Positions 32,698 to 64,000 of a stretch of 64,000 nucleotides of DNA are shown in pieces. The position numbers and the translations under genes were made by a program. Numbering within the stretch: the first letter of the stretch is position 1; the number at the start of each line of letters is the position of its first letter. The notes under the pieces are model-generated. The model did not search any database and had not been told where the DNA came from. It saw nothing but the letters and a program-made list of their open reading frames with translations. The DNA lies in contig OZ004612.1 of assembly GCA_963924565.1 (NCBI GenBank), positions 744,001 through 808,000 on the forward strand, given 5' to 3'. The stretch is from Ascidiella aspersa (lineage: Eukaryota).

Positions 32698-34165
32698 TCA
32701 AAGAAGCTCAATAATTAAACATAAGTTTATTTTTTTGTGATTAAAAGCTCGGCAAGTTTTATATTGCCAAAACGTGATTGCTGTGTTAAAACTCTCGACT
32801 GCTTTTTTATGTAGTTTCATGTGCCAATAACATTCACTGATTCCCAAGTGACAACCTGCAATATGCATCGCTGCTTCTTTATCAGGATCCGACGTCGAAT
32901 GAAGTTCGATTTCTTGTACAAAGCATTTCACCGCATTTTCAAACTTGCCTAGTTGTTGATACGAACAACCGACATAACAAATAGGATATATAAGCTATAG
33001 GATATGTATATTCTTCTGGTGACGCTATTTTTATGTATACTTGCTGTTTTTCGAAATAAGCAACAACTTGCTCAGGTTTGTTAAATTCAAAGCTACAAAT
33101 AATGAGTGCCCCATAACATTTTCCAATCATGGCATCTCTCTCTGCAGTTTTATGAAATCCCAAAAACATTCTTAGAGAAGTTTCCAGTGTGTCACAAGCT
33201 TCCTCGTATCGATCAAGTTGGTTAAGACAAACTCCAGCGTTTAATTGCGCATTTGCAACTAACCGCATAAAGTCATGTCCCTGGTGTCCTTCACATGTGG
33301 AGTTTATTTCTTTGAACTGATCTAAAGCTAATTTGTAGTTTTTTGGGTTTTTATTATAATGTATTCCAATACACTCATACATTTAAGCTCTGACAAAAAC
33401 TTTGCTAAGACGAAAATTTTTACTTGAGGGATAGGGCTCATAAGCCTCGTTATACAAATGGCTTGCTCGCAGAAAGTTTTTCTTATTTACGTGAATTTTA
33501 GCACGGAACGCTTTGCATTCAGCAGGAAGGTGACATTTGTGGTTTGGAACGTAATGCTTACTCTTAGAAATATTTTCCGTCGCGTTTTCAGCTTCTGTGT
33601 AGTTTTCCATCTTGATGTGAGTTTGAGCAAGTTCTAGCAACGCAACTGCTGTGTCGTGATCTGAAGTTTCATCGAAGACCTTTTCACGACATTGAAGTAG
33701 ATATTTCTCGCCGTATTCAATGCTTTCTTTGTATTTACCAATTCCACGGTAATACCGAGCAATATAAAGTTGTGCACATTCCCAAACACTGTCGTTTAGA
33801 ACAATGTTGATTATATCGCCAGCCTTCTTCAACATATTCGTATCAACATACAACCCGAACAACTGGCATTGGACTTCTCGGATCTCCATATCTGTGGTGC
33901 TAAAATGCAAAGCTTGTTCGTAACAATTAATCGCATCCAAGTTCATTCCAAAATCATTGTGACATCTTCCCATCATATCCAAGGTAAAAGCCCGACTTGG
34001 ATCGCGGTCCTCCATAAAATCTAAAGCATGTTGAAAGCACTTTAAAGCGGTTTCGAGCTGATTAACTCTACAGTTACAAAAACCTTCAAAAATGCAACTC
34101 AGTTGTTTTGCTTCTTTCAATTCAAATACATTTTTGCTTCTGCATATAAAACCGCTAAAGTGCAA
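32698..34165 (-). pseudogene. 5'-truncated TPR-only paralog of the NTase-TPR gene
   Basis: ORFs 33383-34165, 32939-33382 and 32698-32931 align co-linearly with the C-terminal TPR part of 60181-63190 (CRSKNVFELKEAK versus CKSKNIFELKKAK; LVANAQLNAGVCLNQL is shared). There is an in-frame TAA at 33383-33385, a frameshift near 32935, and no NTase-domain sequence upstream. Confidence 0.8.
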
Positions 34166-59753: not shown

Positions 59754-60180
59754 ATGTAAAGTATCAAAAATTAAAATTTATACATTTTTTGGTTTATACT
59801 TTCTAGAATGTGACGTCATAGCTAAGCTCGATAAACTCTTGTTCGCTTGATATTTAACTTGTATGCTAGAATAGGCGACCACTGCTCTACCAACTAAACT
59901 AACAACAAAGTGAACAAAATATGTTTTAATAAAAATAAAACAAAGTTTAATTTTTTCGAATTTAATTAAATAATATGTCAGGAACATCACAGATCTTCTT
60001 AACTTTGTCAATAACATCCTAAAATCATATTGACGCTGTAAATAATTGTTGAAAGGCACTGGGGGTCGAAACAAACGATCGAAAAATAGTTTTTTGGCAA
60101 TAACAGGAATACTTAAGACAATTGGGGGACATCAACTCATTCAAAGGAGCTCAATAATTAAACTGGAACGAAGTTTATTT

Positions 60181-61121
60181 TCAATGATTAAAAATAAGCT
60201 CGGCAAATTGTATCATTTTGTCACATTCTTTAATTGCCCCACTGGCCAAAGGATGGTTGATATTTCTGCACAACTTGATTGCTGTTTTCGAACTCTGCAT
60301 TGCTTTGTCAGGTAGCTTCATCTGCAAATAACATCCACTGATTCTCAAGTGACAATCTGCAAAACACATTGCTATTTCTTTGTTAGATTCCGATGTCGAA
60401 TGAAGTTTGATTCCTTGTTCGAAGCATTTCATTGCTTTTTCACACTTGTTAAGTTGTTGATAGGAACAACCGACATAATAAAACAAAACAAATTGTTCTT
60501 CTAATGGAACTAGTTTTATATATTCTTGCCATTTTTTAAAACAAAAAACAACTTGCTCAGGTTTGTTAAATTCAAAGCTGCATCCAATGAGTTCCCTACA
60601 ACATTTTCCAATCATGGCATCTCGCACTACAGTTTTATGAAAACCTACAAGCATTCCAAGGGAAGTTTCCAGTGTATTATAAGCTTTATCGTATCGTTTG
60701 AGTTGGTTGAGACAAACTCCAGCGTTTAATTGCGCATTTGCAACTAACATCATGAAGTCATGAAGAGATGTCCATCACATATGGAGATTACTTCTTTAAA
60801 ATAATCTAACTTTAATTTGTTGTTATCATTATTCACTGCAATACACATATACATATCAGCTCTGACAAGAACTTTGCGTCGCTGAAATTGTTTACTTGAT
60901 GGGTACAGCTCATAAGCTTCCTTGTACAAATCACTTGCTCGTAGAAAGTTTTTCTTTATTCGGTGGATTTTAGCCCAGAGCCGTTTACATTCAGCAGAGA
61001 GATAATATTTGTTGTTTGGAACATAATGTTTACTCTTTGAAATATTTTCCGCCATTTTAATTGCATTTTCAGCTTCTGTGCAGTTTTCCATAGCGATGTA
61101 AGTTTCACCAAGATCTACCAA
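60181..61121 (-). pseudogene. Frameshifted C-terminal TPR continuation of the NTase-TPR gene
   Basis: ORFs 60750-61121 and 60181-60753 continue the TPR array. Relative to the 33-kb paralog there is a 22-nt deletion at about 61128 and a 1-nt deletion at about 60764. Confidence 0.75.
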
Positions 61122-63190
61122 CGCAATTGATCGAAGGCCTTTTCACGACATTGAAGTAGATGTTTCTCGCCGTATTTAATGCTTTCTTTGTATTTACCAA
61201 TTCCATTATAGTATCGTGAAACATGTTGTTGTGCACCTTCTGAAACATTGTCATTAAGTACAAGGTTAAGCATGTTACCAGCATGGTCAAATAAACCTCC
61301 ATAAACATACACTCCGAACAAATAACGTTGGACTTTTTGCCTAACCATATCTGTGCTGTCTGAATGCAAAGCTTTTTGGTAACAATTGATTGCATCCAAG
61401 TTCAATTCAAGCTTATCGTAACAACGTCCCATGTCACATAAAATTGCAGCCCGCATTGGATCGTTTTCTTGCATAAAATCTAAAGCATGTTGAAAGCAAA
61501 TTAAGGTGGTTTTATGCTGTTTGAGTTGATTGTAACAAAAGCCTTCCATATACGTTATGTTTGCTTTTGCTTTTTTTAACTCAAATATATTTTTACTTTT
61601 GCATTTTTTTATGACCTTAATTGCTTCGTTATACAAACGTAAAGACATAAGCGAAAATATTCCACGAATCCAAGTTGATTTTTTTGGTTCAGACTGCTTG
61701 TTGGTGAACGTTTGCAAAGTGGAAGCTAAAGAGAAAAATTCAACAATTCTTGATTTTCCAAATACTTCGAGCAACAAATCATGAAAAGGTTCGAATCTTG
61801 CGTCAAGATAATCGCACTGGCCGGAGTATTTGAAGTAAACCCGCAACCTAACTTCGCAGGCGAAAGCAAGTGCGAACATAAAATCATCAGATTGTTGTTG
61901 TGATATTTGGCTTGGAGTCAATTCCCGCAGAATATCGAAAGAAGACGACGATTTGCAATTATGTCGTCTACCAAGTGCTGCTATAAACAAAGTGACGCTT
62001 CGAAATACGACGCTTTTGATGTTTACTGTGTTTTCAATATACATCAAAGTCAAGCATTCATCTATGTTGAATTTGTCAGTATCCTCCTTTAGTTGTTTTT
62101 CTAAATTCTCATCGAAACGAGATTGTTGCAAGATGTCAATTGTTTTTATCTTCATTTGATCGTAGATTGCATCATCGCCACAAACAAAGCATATTTTAGT
62201 TAAAATATCACCCAAGTGGTAACCGTTTTTAAGGTCAATATCCCGTCCAAGATATTCAAGCATTTCAGAAACAGGTTTGATCAGCTCAGTATCCCAGGGT
62301 TTGTTCGGTGTAGCTGACCTACCAAGTGGGAACTTGCAAGCAAAAGTAACCATTCCATCAAACGAAATACCACGAGGTGTGTGCGCATCAAAGAACCAGC
62401 CCTTACCAATATTTTCCTCAGGCTTATTAATGAATGGCAACGAAACGTGAGGTATTAGTGTTTCACCAAAGTTTACAACCACAACTTGAAACATCACAGA
62501 CACCCAACGGAAATATTGAAGTACTTCCTCATAATCTGAACGATTTTGAACACCTTCTTCCAACAAATAGATGTGCTCGAAATCTGAATAAGGAGTGATT
62601 TCATTTCTAGCAAGTGATCCCATTCCAACCAAAGCATATTTACAAGGAGCTGGACCTGTAGCTTCCACACAAAACTCCATTATATCTGCCATGAGCCATT
62701 TGTATTTTTCTGTGATGATTTTTTGTAAACTCTCTATCAGAATAGTTCTACGTTGATCGGTTTCTGCAAGTGAAATTGCTTTTAGCGCAATATCCTTTAT
62801 CCAACACCGAAAGTCCTTCACTTTAGTGACAGATGCTTCAACCAGTTGCTTCAAACTGTCCACACTGGTGTCATGTCTGCCAGCAAGTTGAAGAACACGC
62901 GAACAAAGCTCAACGAGATCTTTCTCAACCTCAGCAACGTTGTCAGGTTTCCTCACAACAGCTGCGTTTAACAACACAGCGCTGCGAATAAGAGATATTT
63001 TCTTGTCTCTGCCCTCGGGTAATACATCAGCTATTTCGTGATATGCCCGGCCGAGTTGATGGATAACTTTGGCGGATTGTCTTACATCACGTTCCTTTCC
63101 GTTTGCGTAACATAATGACTTTAATTCCTCCGCAAGTTCAAAAGTTTTAGCTTTGTAAATACTGGCTTTAGTATCTGAGCACCCTTGCAT
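61115..63190 (-). CDS. Intronless nucleotidyltransferase (DUF294/GlnD-GlnE-like) plus helical domain plus TPR-repeat protein, 691 aa
   Basis: Long intact ORF with the pol-beta-superfamily signature ALVGMGSLARNEITPYSDFEHIYL (G191-S192, D203, E205). It is followed by a helical region (NIKSVVFR...SSFDILREL...ACEVRLRVY) resembling the NTase-associated substrate-binding domain, then TPR-like repeats (CFQHALDF; DAINCYQKAL; GKYKESIKYGEK). The ATG context is AAAACATG, with a splice acceptor 21 nt upstream. Confidence 0.8.
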   Translation of the reverse strand: MQGCSDTKASIYKAKTFELAEELKSLCYANGKERDVRQSAKVIHQLGRAYHEIADVLPEGRDKKISLIRSAVLLNAAVVRKPDNVAEVEKDLVELCSRVLQLAGRHDTSVDSLKQLVEASVTKVKDFRCWIKDIALKAISLAETDQRRTILIESLQKIITEKYKWLMADIMEFCVEATGPAPCKYALVGMGSLARNEITPYSDFEHIYLLEEGVQNRSDYEEVLQYFRWVSVMFQVVVVNFGETLIPHVSLPFINKPEENIGKGWFFDAHTPRGISFDGMVTFACKFPLGRSATPNKPWDTELIKPVSEMLEYLGRDIDLKNGYHLGDILTKICFVCGDDAIYDQMKIKTIDILQQSRFDENLEKQLKEDTDKFNIDECLTLMYIENTVNIKSVVFRSVTLFIAALGRRHNCKSSSSFDILRELTPSQISQQQSDDFMFALAFACEVRLRVYFKYSGQCDYLDARFEPFHDLLLEVFGKSRIVEFFSLASTLQTFTNKQSEPKKSTWIRGIFSLMSLRLYNEAIKVIKKCKSKNIFELKKAKANITYMEGFCYNQLKQHKTTLICFQHALDFMQENDPMRAAILCDMGRCYDKLELNLDAINCYQKALHSDSTDMVRQKVQRYLFGVYVYGGLFDHAGNMLNLVLNDNVSEGAQQHVSRYYNGIGKYKESIKYGEKHLLQCREKAFDQLRW

Positions 63191-64000
63191 GTTTTAACCA
63201 ATAGTAAATTTCTAAAAGAGCAATTGCTGTAAGTAATACAATACAGAGTAAAATTAATGTTATTTACGTGTTTAACGACGTCTGCATTTCAAGCCACCAA
63301 GTACTACTGACTGTAATTCAACATACATTGTAACTACAGCGTAATATTAAATTTTAAACAATACAAGTTGGCCGGCTGTGACGCGAAAATACATAGACAA
63401 TTAGACATAGAGCCATTGTTTGTCGGCGCGAGCAACGAGCAAACATAATCCCGTAATGTTTGTTTCAAACCTTAACGACAATGTTTCAGGGCGAAGTAAC
63501 AATTTGTAGTTTAGATAAATATATTTTGGAATAACTGTTTTTAATTGTTTCTTTCGACTATTAAAACTACGGCAAAATGCACAACTATTTATAAGTTTAA
63601 TAAATAAATATATTCAAATGCGTTTGCGGTGAGTTCCTACAATTGGTAGCCTACTGTTTTGTTGATTAAATTAAGTTTAAAACTAAAATCGCTGCGTTAC
63701 ATCGAAAACAGAAAATCCGATATAAGGTTGGTTGGTTTGGGACCGATACCACCTATATTATCGGACGACAACCGATACTCAACTTGGCATCGCACAAAAG
63801 CTCCGGTTCGATGTTATCCTTCTGTATTACTGACTTGAAAATTTTGATAATTTTTGACTGAAATTACATGCACTAAAATTGATTTTTTGAAGTCCACATT
63901 TGGAACCCAGTTAAAAGGCAAGTCCTGTTGTCATAATTAAATTTACCTGACGACCAAAGTGAACCTTTCAGCTAACTGGAAGCCACAGCAACAACTTCGT

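Follow-up and report, generated by a model that had tools for sequence, protein, structure and literature searches.

A degraded member of a large chordate gene family combining a predicted GlnE/DrrA-type adenylyltransferase with TPRs in the tunicate Ascidiella aspersa

The gene described here lies on the reverse strand of a 64-kb window (the whole stretch of Ascidiella aspersa DNA that was analysed, 64,000 nucleotides) and is, on balance, probably a degraded copy of a chordate family of TPR-directed AMPylases that evolves by birth and death and has its ancestry in bacterial symbionts. It is a single intronless gene of about 1,005 codons, now spread over three reading frames (window 63190..60181, minus strand), of which the first 691 codons are open and form a 691-aa ORF (61115..63190, minus strand). 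A sequence-only reading of the same DNA had noted this ORF and estimated about 1000 aa before two frameshifts; the ORF is present and the tblastn map covers about 1,005 codons, in agreement with that estimate.

The map was made with an intact 1009-aa paralogue, L004, as tblastn query on the three frames. Residues 1-686 of the paralogue match 63190..61127 with 82% identity, residues 693-816 match 61130..60768 with 71%, and residues 819-1007 match 60762..60196 with 66%. The broken gene was searched as three separate pieces, with intact paralogues serving to map them, and TPR families of Pfam were matched in all three. Residues 1-105 (62876..63190, minus strand) form an N-terminal TPR-like helical cap in the AlphaFold model, and their VIA-align matches are TPR proteins (Z 8-10). 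Residues 106-500 (61691..62875, minus strand) correspond to a DrrA/GlnE-type adenylyltransferase module according to Pfam, Foldseek, VIA-align and profile searches, and are predicted to consist of a pol-beta NTase core and an inactive HEPN-like helical C-domain. The catalytic motif G191-x11-D203-x-E205 (GSLARNEITPYSDFE; 62576..62620, minus strand) is complete in the alignments, from G191 to D203-x-E205, just as had been noticed from the letters. Residues 501-691 (61115..61690, minus strand; Pfam, tblastn) comprise a variable linker and the first TPRs, with a TPR_12 match at residues 549-608 (Pfam).

Two frameshift lesions interrupt the TPR half: a 22-bp deletion near 61130 (site 61127..61131, minus strand), located by DNA alignment against six paralogues, and a 1-bp deletion near 60766 (site 60764..60767, minus strand; DNA alignment). 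The stop codon of the first frame, at 61115-61117, comes shortly after the first deletion. The second TPR piece (60768..61130, minus strand; Pfam, tblastn, DNA alignment) is in the second frame, equals residues 693-816 of the intact paralogue and has an in-frame 9-bp deletion near 60822; the third (60181..60762, minus strand; Pfam, tblastn) is in the third frame, equals residues 819-1007 and terminates at the stop codon of the family, 60181-60183. Both frameshifting deletions lie outside homopolymers, and none of the six paralogues used for comparison has either of them, which implies that these are real lesions and not typical assembly slips. The closest paralogue, L002, with 95% DNA identity, has neither of them. 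This copy thus appears to be a pseudogene or a truncated allele.

Several candidate elements of a eukaryotic gene surround the coding region. The motif TTCGCGTCACA (63377..63387, minus strand), a candidate promoter element 187-197 nt 5' of the ATG, has a single match within the 64-kb window; seven paralogue loci have one or two exact copies of it at the corresponding position, and the family consensus is GTCGCGTCACA. A polypyrimidine tract with AG (63212..63240, minus strand) is a candidate 3' splice or trans-splice acceptor of a 5'-UTR intron; its closing AG is about 20 nt 5' of the ATG, and the TTTTTT-AG-AA element is conserved in 11 paralogues. An AATAAA directly 3' of the stop codon (60174..60179, minus strand) is a candidate polyadenylation signal. 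The G+C content of the gene is 0.36-0.38, and that of the window ranges from about 0.29 to 0.41. Only five ORFs of at least 150 aa are present in the window, and no RNA family was found anywhere in it with Rfam at gathering thresholds. The window also includes a second, 5'-truncated remnant of the family (32719..34141, minus strand), consisting of a TPR array only, without the enzyme module; it corresponds to residues 529-998 of the intact paralogue (tblastn, 67% and 56% identity), and Pfam TPR matches are found on its ORF at 33383..34165.

By fold and motif, the enzyme is predicted to be a GlnE/DrrA-type adenylyltransferase (ATase class). The assignment made from the sequence, to the GlnD/GlnE/DUF294 branch and not to the standard animal NTases, was upheld by Pfam, by fold searches and by comparison of a profile with the PDB. 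PF03445 (DUF294) scored 33.1 bits at residues 145-225 of the window ORF and 30.7 bits on L004, with a gathering cut-off of 21, and PF10335 is recorded for many relatives. The AlphaFold model (pLDDT 85, pTM 0.87) has the pol-beta fold that the sequence-only reading had proposed to look for with PF03445 and Foldseek in the enzyme region; the only Foldseek matches with a probability of 1.0 were GlnE-N, GlnE-C and DrrA (3k7d, 1v4a, 6yx5). With VIA-align, DrrA/SidM of Legionella pneumophila (6yx5, 3nku, 3l0i) was the best structural match, with Z 26.3 over 319 residues, followed by the two domains of E. coli GlnE (1v4a, 3k7d) with Z 25.4 and 24.3; these alignments of about 320 residues span model residues 42/109-505, and the next, unrelated matches are near Z 10. 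When the ORF alone was searched with phmmer against PDB sequences, only designed TPR proteins were matched, and the enzyme match needed the profile of the family module, for which DrrA was the sole match (E 1.8e-9). The profile alignment passes through GSLA[KR]..T.YSD[LF][DE] and the C-terminal helical domain (DrrA residues 189-329), and the G-x11-D-x-[DE] motif aligns column for column with DrrA, GlnE-N, GlnE-C and GlnD. The predicted models show only the cap, the NTase module and TPRs; the full-length model is moderate (pTM 0.55) and does not define the contact of the TPR array with the active site.

Among characterised proteins DrrA is thus the closest, sharing with the family the extended motif GSLA[KR]x[EQ]xTxYSD[LF][DE] and the inactive HEPN-like helical C-domain, and likewise coming from an intracellular bacterium. 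Identity between the two is only about 12%, however, and their domain orders differ: in DrrA the enzyme is followed by the Rab1 GEF and PI4P-binding domains, whereas in the chordate family it is preceded by the TPR-like cap and followed by the TPR solenoid. DrrA is a single secreted effector; the chordate proteins form an endogenous animal multigene family whose activity is predicted. GlnE, which AMPylates protein tyrosine, shares the fold in both of its domains and aligns at G-x11-D-x-D, but there is essentially no sequence similarity to the chordate protein beyond the motif, and its two tandem NTase modules have opposing, PII-regulated activities, whereas the chordate protein has one module and no PII context. 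GlnE proper was rejected, there being one NTase module per tunicate protein and no GlnE match in Pfam or NCBIfam. The N-terminal NTase of GlnD belongs to the same clade and gave weak NCBIfam matches at the motif (E 0.001-0.007); GlnD itself was rejected, as these scores are 14.5-17 bits against cut-offs of 631-799 and its HD (uridylyl-removing) and ACT domains are missing from the chordate protein. The database label 'Protein-PII uridylyltransferase N-terminal domain-containing protein' derives from GlnD and is a domain label only. The cGAS/MAB21, OAS and CD-NTase families were also rejected, since none of them turned up with Pfam, PADLOC, Foldseek or VIA-align (PADLOC found nothing on the chordate protein), as was an NLR/STAND-type receptor, with no NACHT or NB-ARC in the window ORF or L004 (Pfam).

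The local expansion suggested by the sequence-only reading is massive. At least 80 loci of the family are present in this genome, most of them in one tandem cluster and together spread over seven chromosome-scale contigs of 26-41 Mb; the genome search returned at least 71 protein matches, and 80 loci score above the PF03445 cut-off. Of the 45 nearest copies, about 30 have open frames of at least 980 aa and count as intact. Intact members, about 1,010 aa long and presumably cytosolic, have the cap, the predicted adenylyltransferase module and, at the C-terminus, a solenoid of about 9-11 TPR-like hairpins; the N-terminal sequence has no evident signal peptide, which would fit a cytosolic protein. 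Seven residues (G191, S192, D203, E205, D268, D278, K286) are invariant in alignments of the tunicate members, and most of them stay invariant when Neochlamydia and related proteins are added; D268 or D278 may be the third catalytic carboxylate.

The family evolves by birth and death, and its two halves differ in rate. Between paralogues the enzyme half is 92-95% identical in DNA and the TPR half 76-90%. Among six copies, at the level of domains, dN/dS is 0.28 for the enzyme and 0.64 for the TPR half, and dN is 0.036 against 0.177, about five times higher in the TPR half. The TPR half diverges fast; purifying selection, probably together with gene conversion, keeps the enzyme half almost the same from copy to copy. 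In these six copies no window of the gene has a robust dN/dS above 1, so that the fast change of the TPRs could be relaxed constraint.

The nearest proteins are those of the tunicate Clavelina, with 43% identity. In amphioxus the family is hugely expanded, with 832 matches at E <=1e-10 and a match list dominated by Branchiostoma paralogues. No cnidarian cluster was seen in the atlas of protein clusters. In databases the chordate family is concealed behind names such as 'TTC28', 'KLC1' and 'PII uridylyltransferase N-terminal domain'. Among 72,556 plasmids, Neochlamydia pS13 was the sole match, at 11 places; chordate and Neochlamydia proteins align collinearly (26% identity, 432 aa, E 1e-29), and from a Neochlamydia query the best named non-chlamydial matches are amphioxus proteins. 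A scan of genome contigs with tunicate-only patterns gave no bacterial relative, and the symbionts were found after Neochlamydia sequences had been added to the alignment. The only bacterial relatives found are intracellular symbionts (Parachlamydiaceae, Rhabdochlamydiaceae, Holosporaceae and Gammaproteobacteria MAGs), with 4-18 family copies in each genome and 26-36% identity to the chordate proteins; amphioxus is about equally distant from tunicates and from bacteria. The presence of the family in three unrelated symbiont lineages suggests that transfer among symbionts is frequent.

The architecture F-box + DUF294 + TPR has been described in Neochlamydia as NEX2 (Domman et al. 2014, PMC4209131). 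The sequence-only reading had placed NTase-TPR fusions in amoeba-associated bacteria and a few marine invertebrates; Neochlamydia NEX2 (PMC4209131) proves the former right, and tunicates and amphioxus the latter. NEX2 and its symbiont relatives are collinear with the chordate proteins (helical cap, enzyme, TPRs), share with them the GSLAR-E-TPYSD-E, N-GETI-P and TPRG-FDG motifs and, like them, are expanded to many copies within each genome. Bacterial members of this type are, however, often far longer (up to about 3,000 aa), and many carry an N-terminal F-box or OTU domain, neither of which is present in the window ORF or L004; their TPRs are canonical TPR_12/TPR_10 repeats that score far above those of the chordates.

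These relationships suggest common ancestry of the chordate genes and the effector-like proteins that obligate intracellular bacteria carry in many copies. In the tree the chordates form a single clade nested among symbiont proteins, separate from and outside the Neochlamydia clade, with support of 100/100 for tunicates, 100/98 for amphioxus, 96/80 for the two together and 100/97 for the chordate clade with one Holosporaceae protein. An early chordate most probably captured the gene once; the captured gene would then have acquired the promoter motif, the 5'-UTR intron and the polyA signal, and separate expansions would have followed in tunicates and in amphioxus. Acquisition from bacteria, as the sequence-only reading had proposed, is compatible with the trees, but the direction of transfer is weakly rooted: the root is either the midpoint or a very distant outgroup of E. 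coli GlnE/GlnD (about 12-14% identical), which places it within the bacterial part of the tree but joins beside long branches with deep support of 33-72, and the nearest bacterial sequence, L058, is a long branch itself.

Alternatively, the family could be old in animals, and intracellular bacteria could have taken the gene from eukaryotic hosts, as with F-box and further domains of eukaryotic type. The joining of the module to eukaryote-type F-box and OTU domains in NEX2 members (PMC4209131), its occurrence in symbionts of three unrelated bacterial lineages and an amphioxus-tunicate distance close to that between amphioxus and bacteria all point in this direction. The DUF294/GlnD/GlnE superfamily is otherwise bacterial, however; the nearest atlas clusters of the amphioxus module are 80-100% bacterial, the bacterial sequences are far more diverse and flank the chordate clade under both midpoint and outgroup rooting, and the coding sequence is intronless within an intron-rich genome, which together make a host-to-symbiont transfer unlikely. 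A bacterial-type domain in a coding sequence without introns might be expected from bacterial contamination or an assembly artefact, but this explanation was rejected and its probability is negligible: the loci, at least 80 in number, are spread over seven chromosome-scale contigs, the G+C content of the gene is close to the window range, the gene has a conserved candidate acceptor, promoter motif and polyA signal, and the Clavelina proteins are nearest (43%), with bacterial relatives only 26-30% identical.

The function of the family is most likely that of a TPR-directed protein AMPylase, by analogy with its relatives. Like GlnE, GlnD and DrrA, the enzyme would move AMP, or another NMP, from an NTP to a hydroxyl side chain of a protein, and the variable TPR array would pick the protein target or an activating partner. 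To our knowledge, every characterised relative (GlnE, GlnD, DrrA) nucleotidylates protein tyrosine. The 'nucleotide signal' that had been offered as another product is therefore unlikely, the closest relative by sequence being the protein AMPylase DrrA. Synthesis of a nucleotide second messenger, as by cGAS, CD-NTases or OAS, draws only on the common pol-beta superfamily and on the general logic of sensor-NTase fusions; with those families unmatched by sequence or fold and the characterised members of the matched clade all modifying proteins, it is highly improbable. We know of no substrate for generic DUF294 proteins, so a non-protein acceptor, such as a small molecule or an RNA 3' end, is conceivable. 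Within the same superfamily, kanamycin nucleotidyltransferase and MNT-type enzymes use non-protein acceptors, and a weak profile match to the former at the catalytic motif (E 0.1) and a VIA-align Z of 7.5 to AAD(9) agree with this possibility; DrrA and GlnE, however, match far better (Z 24-26; E 1.8e-9), and long TPR arrays serve to bind proteins, so that such an acceptor is improbable.

A rather more serious competitor, though still somewhat unlikely, is a sensor-gated immune receptor in which the TPRs bind a non-self ligand and switch the enzyme on, the family being an innate-immune repertoire of sensor-effectors. Tandem expansions that are very large, specific to each lineage and rich in pseudogenes, the sharp boundary between conserved and variable halves with the fivefold dN of the TPRs, kinship to host-manipulating proteins of intracellular bacteria and the apparently cytosolic N-terminus would all suit such a role. 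Against it, NACHT, NB-ARC, TIR and death domains are all absent from the window ORF and L004, PADLOC gives nothing for the chordate protein, dN/dS of the TPRs averages 0.64 and is not above 1, and target-selecting enzymes outside defence would fit expansion and diversification as well. More speculatively, and with rather low probability, invertebrate chordates may have built a hitherto unrecognised immune arsenal from a captured bacterial effector: hundreds of DrrA-type AMPylases with hypervariable TPR arrays, each specific for a different microbial or altered-self protein, that would AMPylate the protein so recognised or, in response to it, a host signalling protein. If true, this would be a third, sensor-coupled class of animal AMPylase, aimed at the kind of intracellular bacteria from which it came.

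According to a review of 2025, the AMPylases of eukaryotes are FICD, with the Fic fold, and SelO, with the kinase fold, and the ATase class consists only of bacterial proteins, GS-ATase (GlnE) and the Legionella effector SidM/DrrA (PMC12409994). FICD/HYPE, an animal protein with TPRs and an AMPylating domain (PMC12409994), is a functional analogy only: it has the unrelated Fic catalytic fold and is single-copy and anchored in the ER membrane, and its few TPRs are N-terminal. A literature search for DUF294-related proteins in tunicates and amphioxus, across about 8.4 million papers and preprints, found no description of the chordate family.

As a TPR-directed AMPylase, the chordate family would be a third class of animal AMPylase, by analogy with its bacterial relatives, and the whole family matters more than the copy at 61115-63190. 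The ATase class appears here as an endogenous animal gene family, with at least 80 loci, an invariant catalytic site and hundreds of amphioxus entries. All bacterial relatives found are proteins that obligate intracellular symbionts carry in many copies, which makes the family a clear-cut example in which to study how a host-manipulating enzyme may pass between bacteria and animals and then diversify. For AMPylation research, it would provide a large natural library in which one enzyme is joined to many TPR specificity modules.

Downstream of the 691-codon ORF in the ORF listing of the window (61115..63190, minus strand), the same strand carries two further ORFs, one of 123 and one of 190 codons, which use the two remaining frames. 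When the intact 1009-aa paralogue of the same genome, L004, was mapped onto this region by tblastn, aa 1-686 matched 63190..61127 (82% identity), aa 693-816 matched 61130..60768 (71%) and aa 819-1007 matched 60762..60196 (66%), all on the minus strand. Since the three pieces are collinear with L004 and do not overlap, they represent one gene of about 1,005 codons with two frameshifts, as had been read from the sequence alone. The broken gene was searched as separate pieces, never joined. DNA alignment with six paralogues defined three deletions on the minus strand: two that break the frame, of 22 bp near 61130 and of 1 bp near 60766, and one in-frame deletion of 9 bp near 60822. None of the three lies in a homopolymer, and no paralogue in this alignment, not even L002 as the nearest copy at 95% DNA identity, shares the frame-breaking ones; these are therefore taken as real lesions. 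From these features we take the window copy to be a pseudogene, or at best the source of a truncated protein containing the enzyme and about three TPRs.

The enzyme module was recognized by Pfam DUF294 (PF03445) at aa 145-225 with 33.1 bits (cut-off 21), and Pfam TPR families were present in all three pieces of the gene; GlnD models of NCBIfam matched faintly at the motif only, far under their cut-off. Residues 1-520 were modelled confidently with AlphaFold2 on the basis of 30 family members (pLDDT 85, pTM 0.87). Foldseek against the PDB returned four matches to three proteins at E < 0.001, all with probability 1.0: the C-terminal domain of E. coli GlnE (3k7d, two chains), the GlnE N-terminal domain (1v4a) and Legionella DrrA (6yx5). 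An independent structural aligner gave Z 26.3 for DrrA (319 residues) and 25.4 and 24.3 for GlnE, with the next unrelated structures near Z 10. Both the domain and the predicted nucleotidyltransferase fold thus agree with the sequence-only reading, and the fold is of the GlnE/DrrA type. Residues 1-105 of the model align to TPR proteins at Z 8-10 and are read as a TPR-like cap.

Profile A4, which covers the enzyme module alone in 26 chordate and bacterial sequences, matched a single family among all PDB sequences, DrrA (E 1.8e-9). The alignment spans the catalytic motif (GSLAReEiTPYSDlE in the family, GSLAKAQATEYSDLD in DrrA) and the C-terminal helical domain, and in E. coli GlnE (both domains) and GlnD the G-x11-D-x-D motif falls in the same columns. 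Residues G191, S192, D203, E205, D268, D278 and K286 are invariant across the tunicate alignments, and most of them remain so once Neochlamydia and related proteins are added; the motif residues G191, D203 and E205, which the first reading had described as intact, are indeed preserved in the window ORF. The helical C-domain is one of the HEPN-like domains without catalytic activity that occur in GlnD/E-type enzymes and DrrA (PMC3710099). Modelled at full length (pLDDT 75.6, pTM 0.55), the intact paralogue shows a confident enzyme module, a poorly predicted stretch at aa 503-645 that is also the most variable part, and then about nine regular helical hairpins up to the C-terminus.

A six-frame search of the genome gave 71 matches. 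Contig C6, on which the window occupies 744001-808000, has most of them: they are 75-93% identical and follow one another head to tail on its minus strand from 0.72 to 2.66 Mb. C2, C3, C7 and C9 carry others, and deeper paralogues show 45-58% identity. The Pfam model detected 80 loci, every one above the cut-off; small clusters at C6:22.15 Mb and C2:9.03 Mb are among them. Uninterrupted frames of at least 980 aa were found in about 30 of the 45 nearest near-full-length copies, so that the supposed local expansion is real and contains intact paralogues. Within the window, a second remnant at 32719-34141 (minus strand) is a TPR array that corresponds, at 67% and 56% identity, to aa 529-998 of the intact paralogue. 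Its frame changes once, near 33000, and an enzyme module is missing upstream, so that it represents either a 5'-truncated pseudogene or a TPR-only gene.

Across six intact copies, dN/dS rises from 0.28 in the enzyme (dN 0.036, dS 0.13) to 0.64 in the TPR half (dN 0.177, dS 0.275), with the step at about codon 500; the enzyme of these copies is under purifying selection. No convincing case of dN/dS above 1 was seen in any 50-codon window of the six. Among twelve copies, DNA identity of the enzyme half is a flat 92-95% between almost any pair, and that of the TPR half is 76-90%, reaching 95% only where L002 is compared with the window copy, its recent sister. Synonymous distance is about halved in the 5' part (L002-L012 and the window copy). 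The flat identity and the lower 5' distance suggest gene conversion or another homogenising process, which may be confined to the enzyme half, in tracts ending near codon 500, while the TPR half diversified or was reshuffled.

The gene looks fully eukaryotic in its flanking signals. An acceptor-like polypyrimidine tract ends in AG 20 nt 5' of the ATG, and AATAAA lies directly 3' of the stop codon. The 11-nt motif GTCGCGTCACA, a candidate family-specific promoter element, has its sole site in the 64-kb window at 63377-63387 (minus strand); it is kept among paralogues, single or doubled, 190-230 nt upstream of the ATG, and seven loci (L003-L008 and L075) carry it in an equivalent position, frequently as two copies 21 nt apart. 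No Rfam family reached its gathering threshold anywhere in the window.

The best database matches to the window ORF reach only 43% identity; Clavelina lepadiformis, a tunicate, is the source of the named ones, and large eukaryotic contigs hold most of the others. In an exhaustive search of 1.84 billion cluster representatives, 1,539 clusters reached E <= 0.001, and 409 of them also passed E <= 1e-30. Among 72,556 plasmids, tblastn with the enzyme module hit a single record, pS13 of Neochlamydia sp. S13, in 11 places, where the annotated proteins combine F-box, DUF294 and TPR, or DUF294 and TPR. These are the NEX2 family (Domman et al. 2014, PMC4209131), and they bear out the first reading that such fusions occur in amoeba-associated bacteria. 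The Neochlamydia and tunicate proteins align collinearly through the helical cap and the whole enzyme (26% over 432 aa, E 1e-29) and share GSLAR-E-TPYSD-E, N-GETI-P and TPRG-FDG, which GlnE and GlnD lack at the aligned catalytic site. In the reverse search from Neochlamydia, the best named non-chlamydial matches were from Branchiostoma (32-38% identity); together with Clavelina, they substantiate the occurrence first proposed for a few marine invertebrates. Amphioxus has its own very large expansion (832 matches at E <= 1e-10), with many matches named 'TTC28', 'KLC1' or 'PII uridylyltransferase N-terminal domain-containing'. Nine Branchiostoma models (P0126, P0127, P0130, P0370-P0375) hold two or three enzyme modules each, those of P0126 (2060 aa) being three with identical scores; many such models are misnamed TTC28 or KLC1, and they are either true multi-module proteins or fused tandem genes.

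A scan of one bacterial genome per species, with patterns from a mixed alignment, gave 15 loci, from a Parachlamydiaceae MAG, Rhabdochlamydiaceae (including, by record title, a Dictyostelium symbiont), the Holosporaceae bacterium 'Namur', two Gammaproteobacteria MAGs and uncultured Chlamydiae. In five of these genomes the copy number is 4-18, with frames of 800-3,000 aa. The named ones fall in lineages, such as Holosporaceae and the chlamydial families, that are known to associate with eukaryotes intracellularly. In one 3-Mb Gammaproteobacteria MAG (OZ257147.1, OZ257148.1), a 697-kb 'chromosome 1' bears 15 of the 18 DUF294 matches (e.g. L019-L023, L029, L034, L039). Their open frames span about 900-3,000 aa, which makes an unusually dense arsenal for one small replicon.

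A quick tree of 114 modules and a careful one of 68 (LG+C20; ultrafast bootstrap/SH-aLRT) were concordant. In the latter, tunicate-type (100/100) and amphioxus (100/98) sequences each form a single clade, and these are sister groups (96/80). A single Holosporaceae protein on a long branch stands closest to them (100/97). Further out come a clade that unites Holosporaceae, Neochlamydia and unnamed sequences (92/78) and, under midpoint rooting, the remaining chlamydial and gammaproteobacterial groups. When E. coli GlnE and GlnD serve as outgroup, the tree roots within the bacterial part and the chordates remain one nested clade (97), which is compatible with the proposed horizontal acquisition; the deep nodes of this tree are weak (33-72) and the outgroup attaches to long branches. 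By BLAST, amphioxus modules are about equally near to Parachlamydiaceae (36%) and tunicates (34-38%), and the atlas clusters nearest to the amphioxus module are bacterial. Tree nesting, BLAST distances and these bacterial neighbours appear to fit best with a single ancient capture, from an intracellular bacterium, that predates the tunicate-amphioxus split and was followed by separate expansions, though the transfer may, with lower probability, have run in the reverse direction, from eukaryote to bacterium.

The family combines a conserved G-x11-D-x-[DE] motif, the DrrA/GlnE fold, a TPR solenoid and purifying selection on the enzyme. By analogy, the enzyme would probably move AMP, or another NMP, onto a protein side chain, and the TPR array would choose the target or the activating partner. 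All three characterised relatives, GlnE, DrrA and GlnD, transfer to protein side chains, and GlnD modifies PII. The target of GlnE is glutamine synthetase and that of DrrA is Rab1 (PMC12409994). A non-protein acceptor is possible with low probability, and a second-messenger synthase would be very surprising. The sensor-gated immune role favoured at first sight is a more specific version of side-chain transfer, and its one argument is the pattern of expansion and diversification; we consider it a tentative option.

Motif and predicted fold place the module in Pfam DUF294 and in the ATase (GlnE/DrrA) class. The protein is not GlnE proper, which has two modules instead of one, nor GlnD, whose HD and ACT domains it lacks; it is neither an NLR nor a cGAS-like enzyme. 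Its DUF294 and TPR core is arranged as in Neochlamydia NEX2, but neither the window ORF nor L004 has an F-box, and the chordate proteins branch apart from Neochlamydia in the tree. A 2025 review gives FICD and SelO as the eukaryotic AMPylases (PMC12409994), and our literature search for DUF294 in tunicates or amphioxus found no paper. The family is thus regarded as a new animal form of a known kind of enzyme; the window copy is a dead member of it, and the interest resides in the family.
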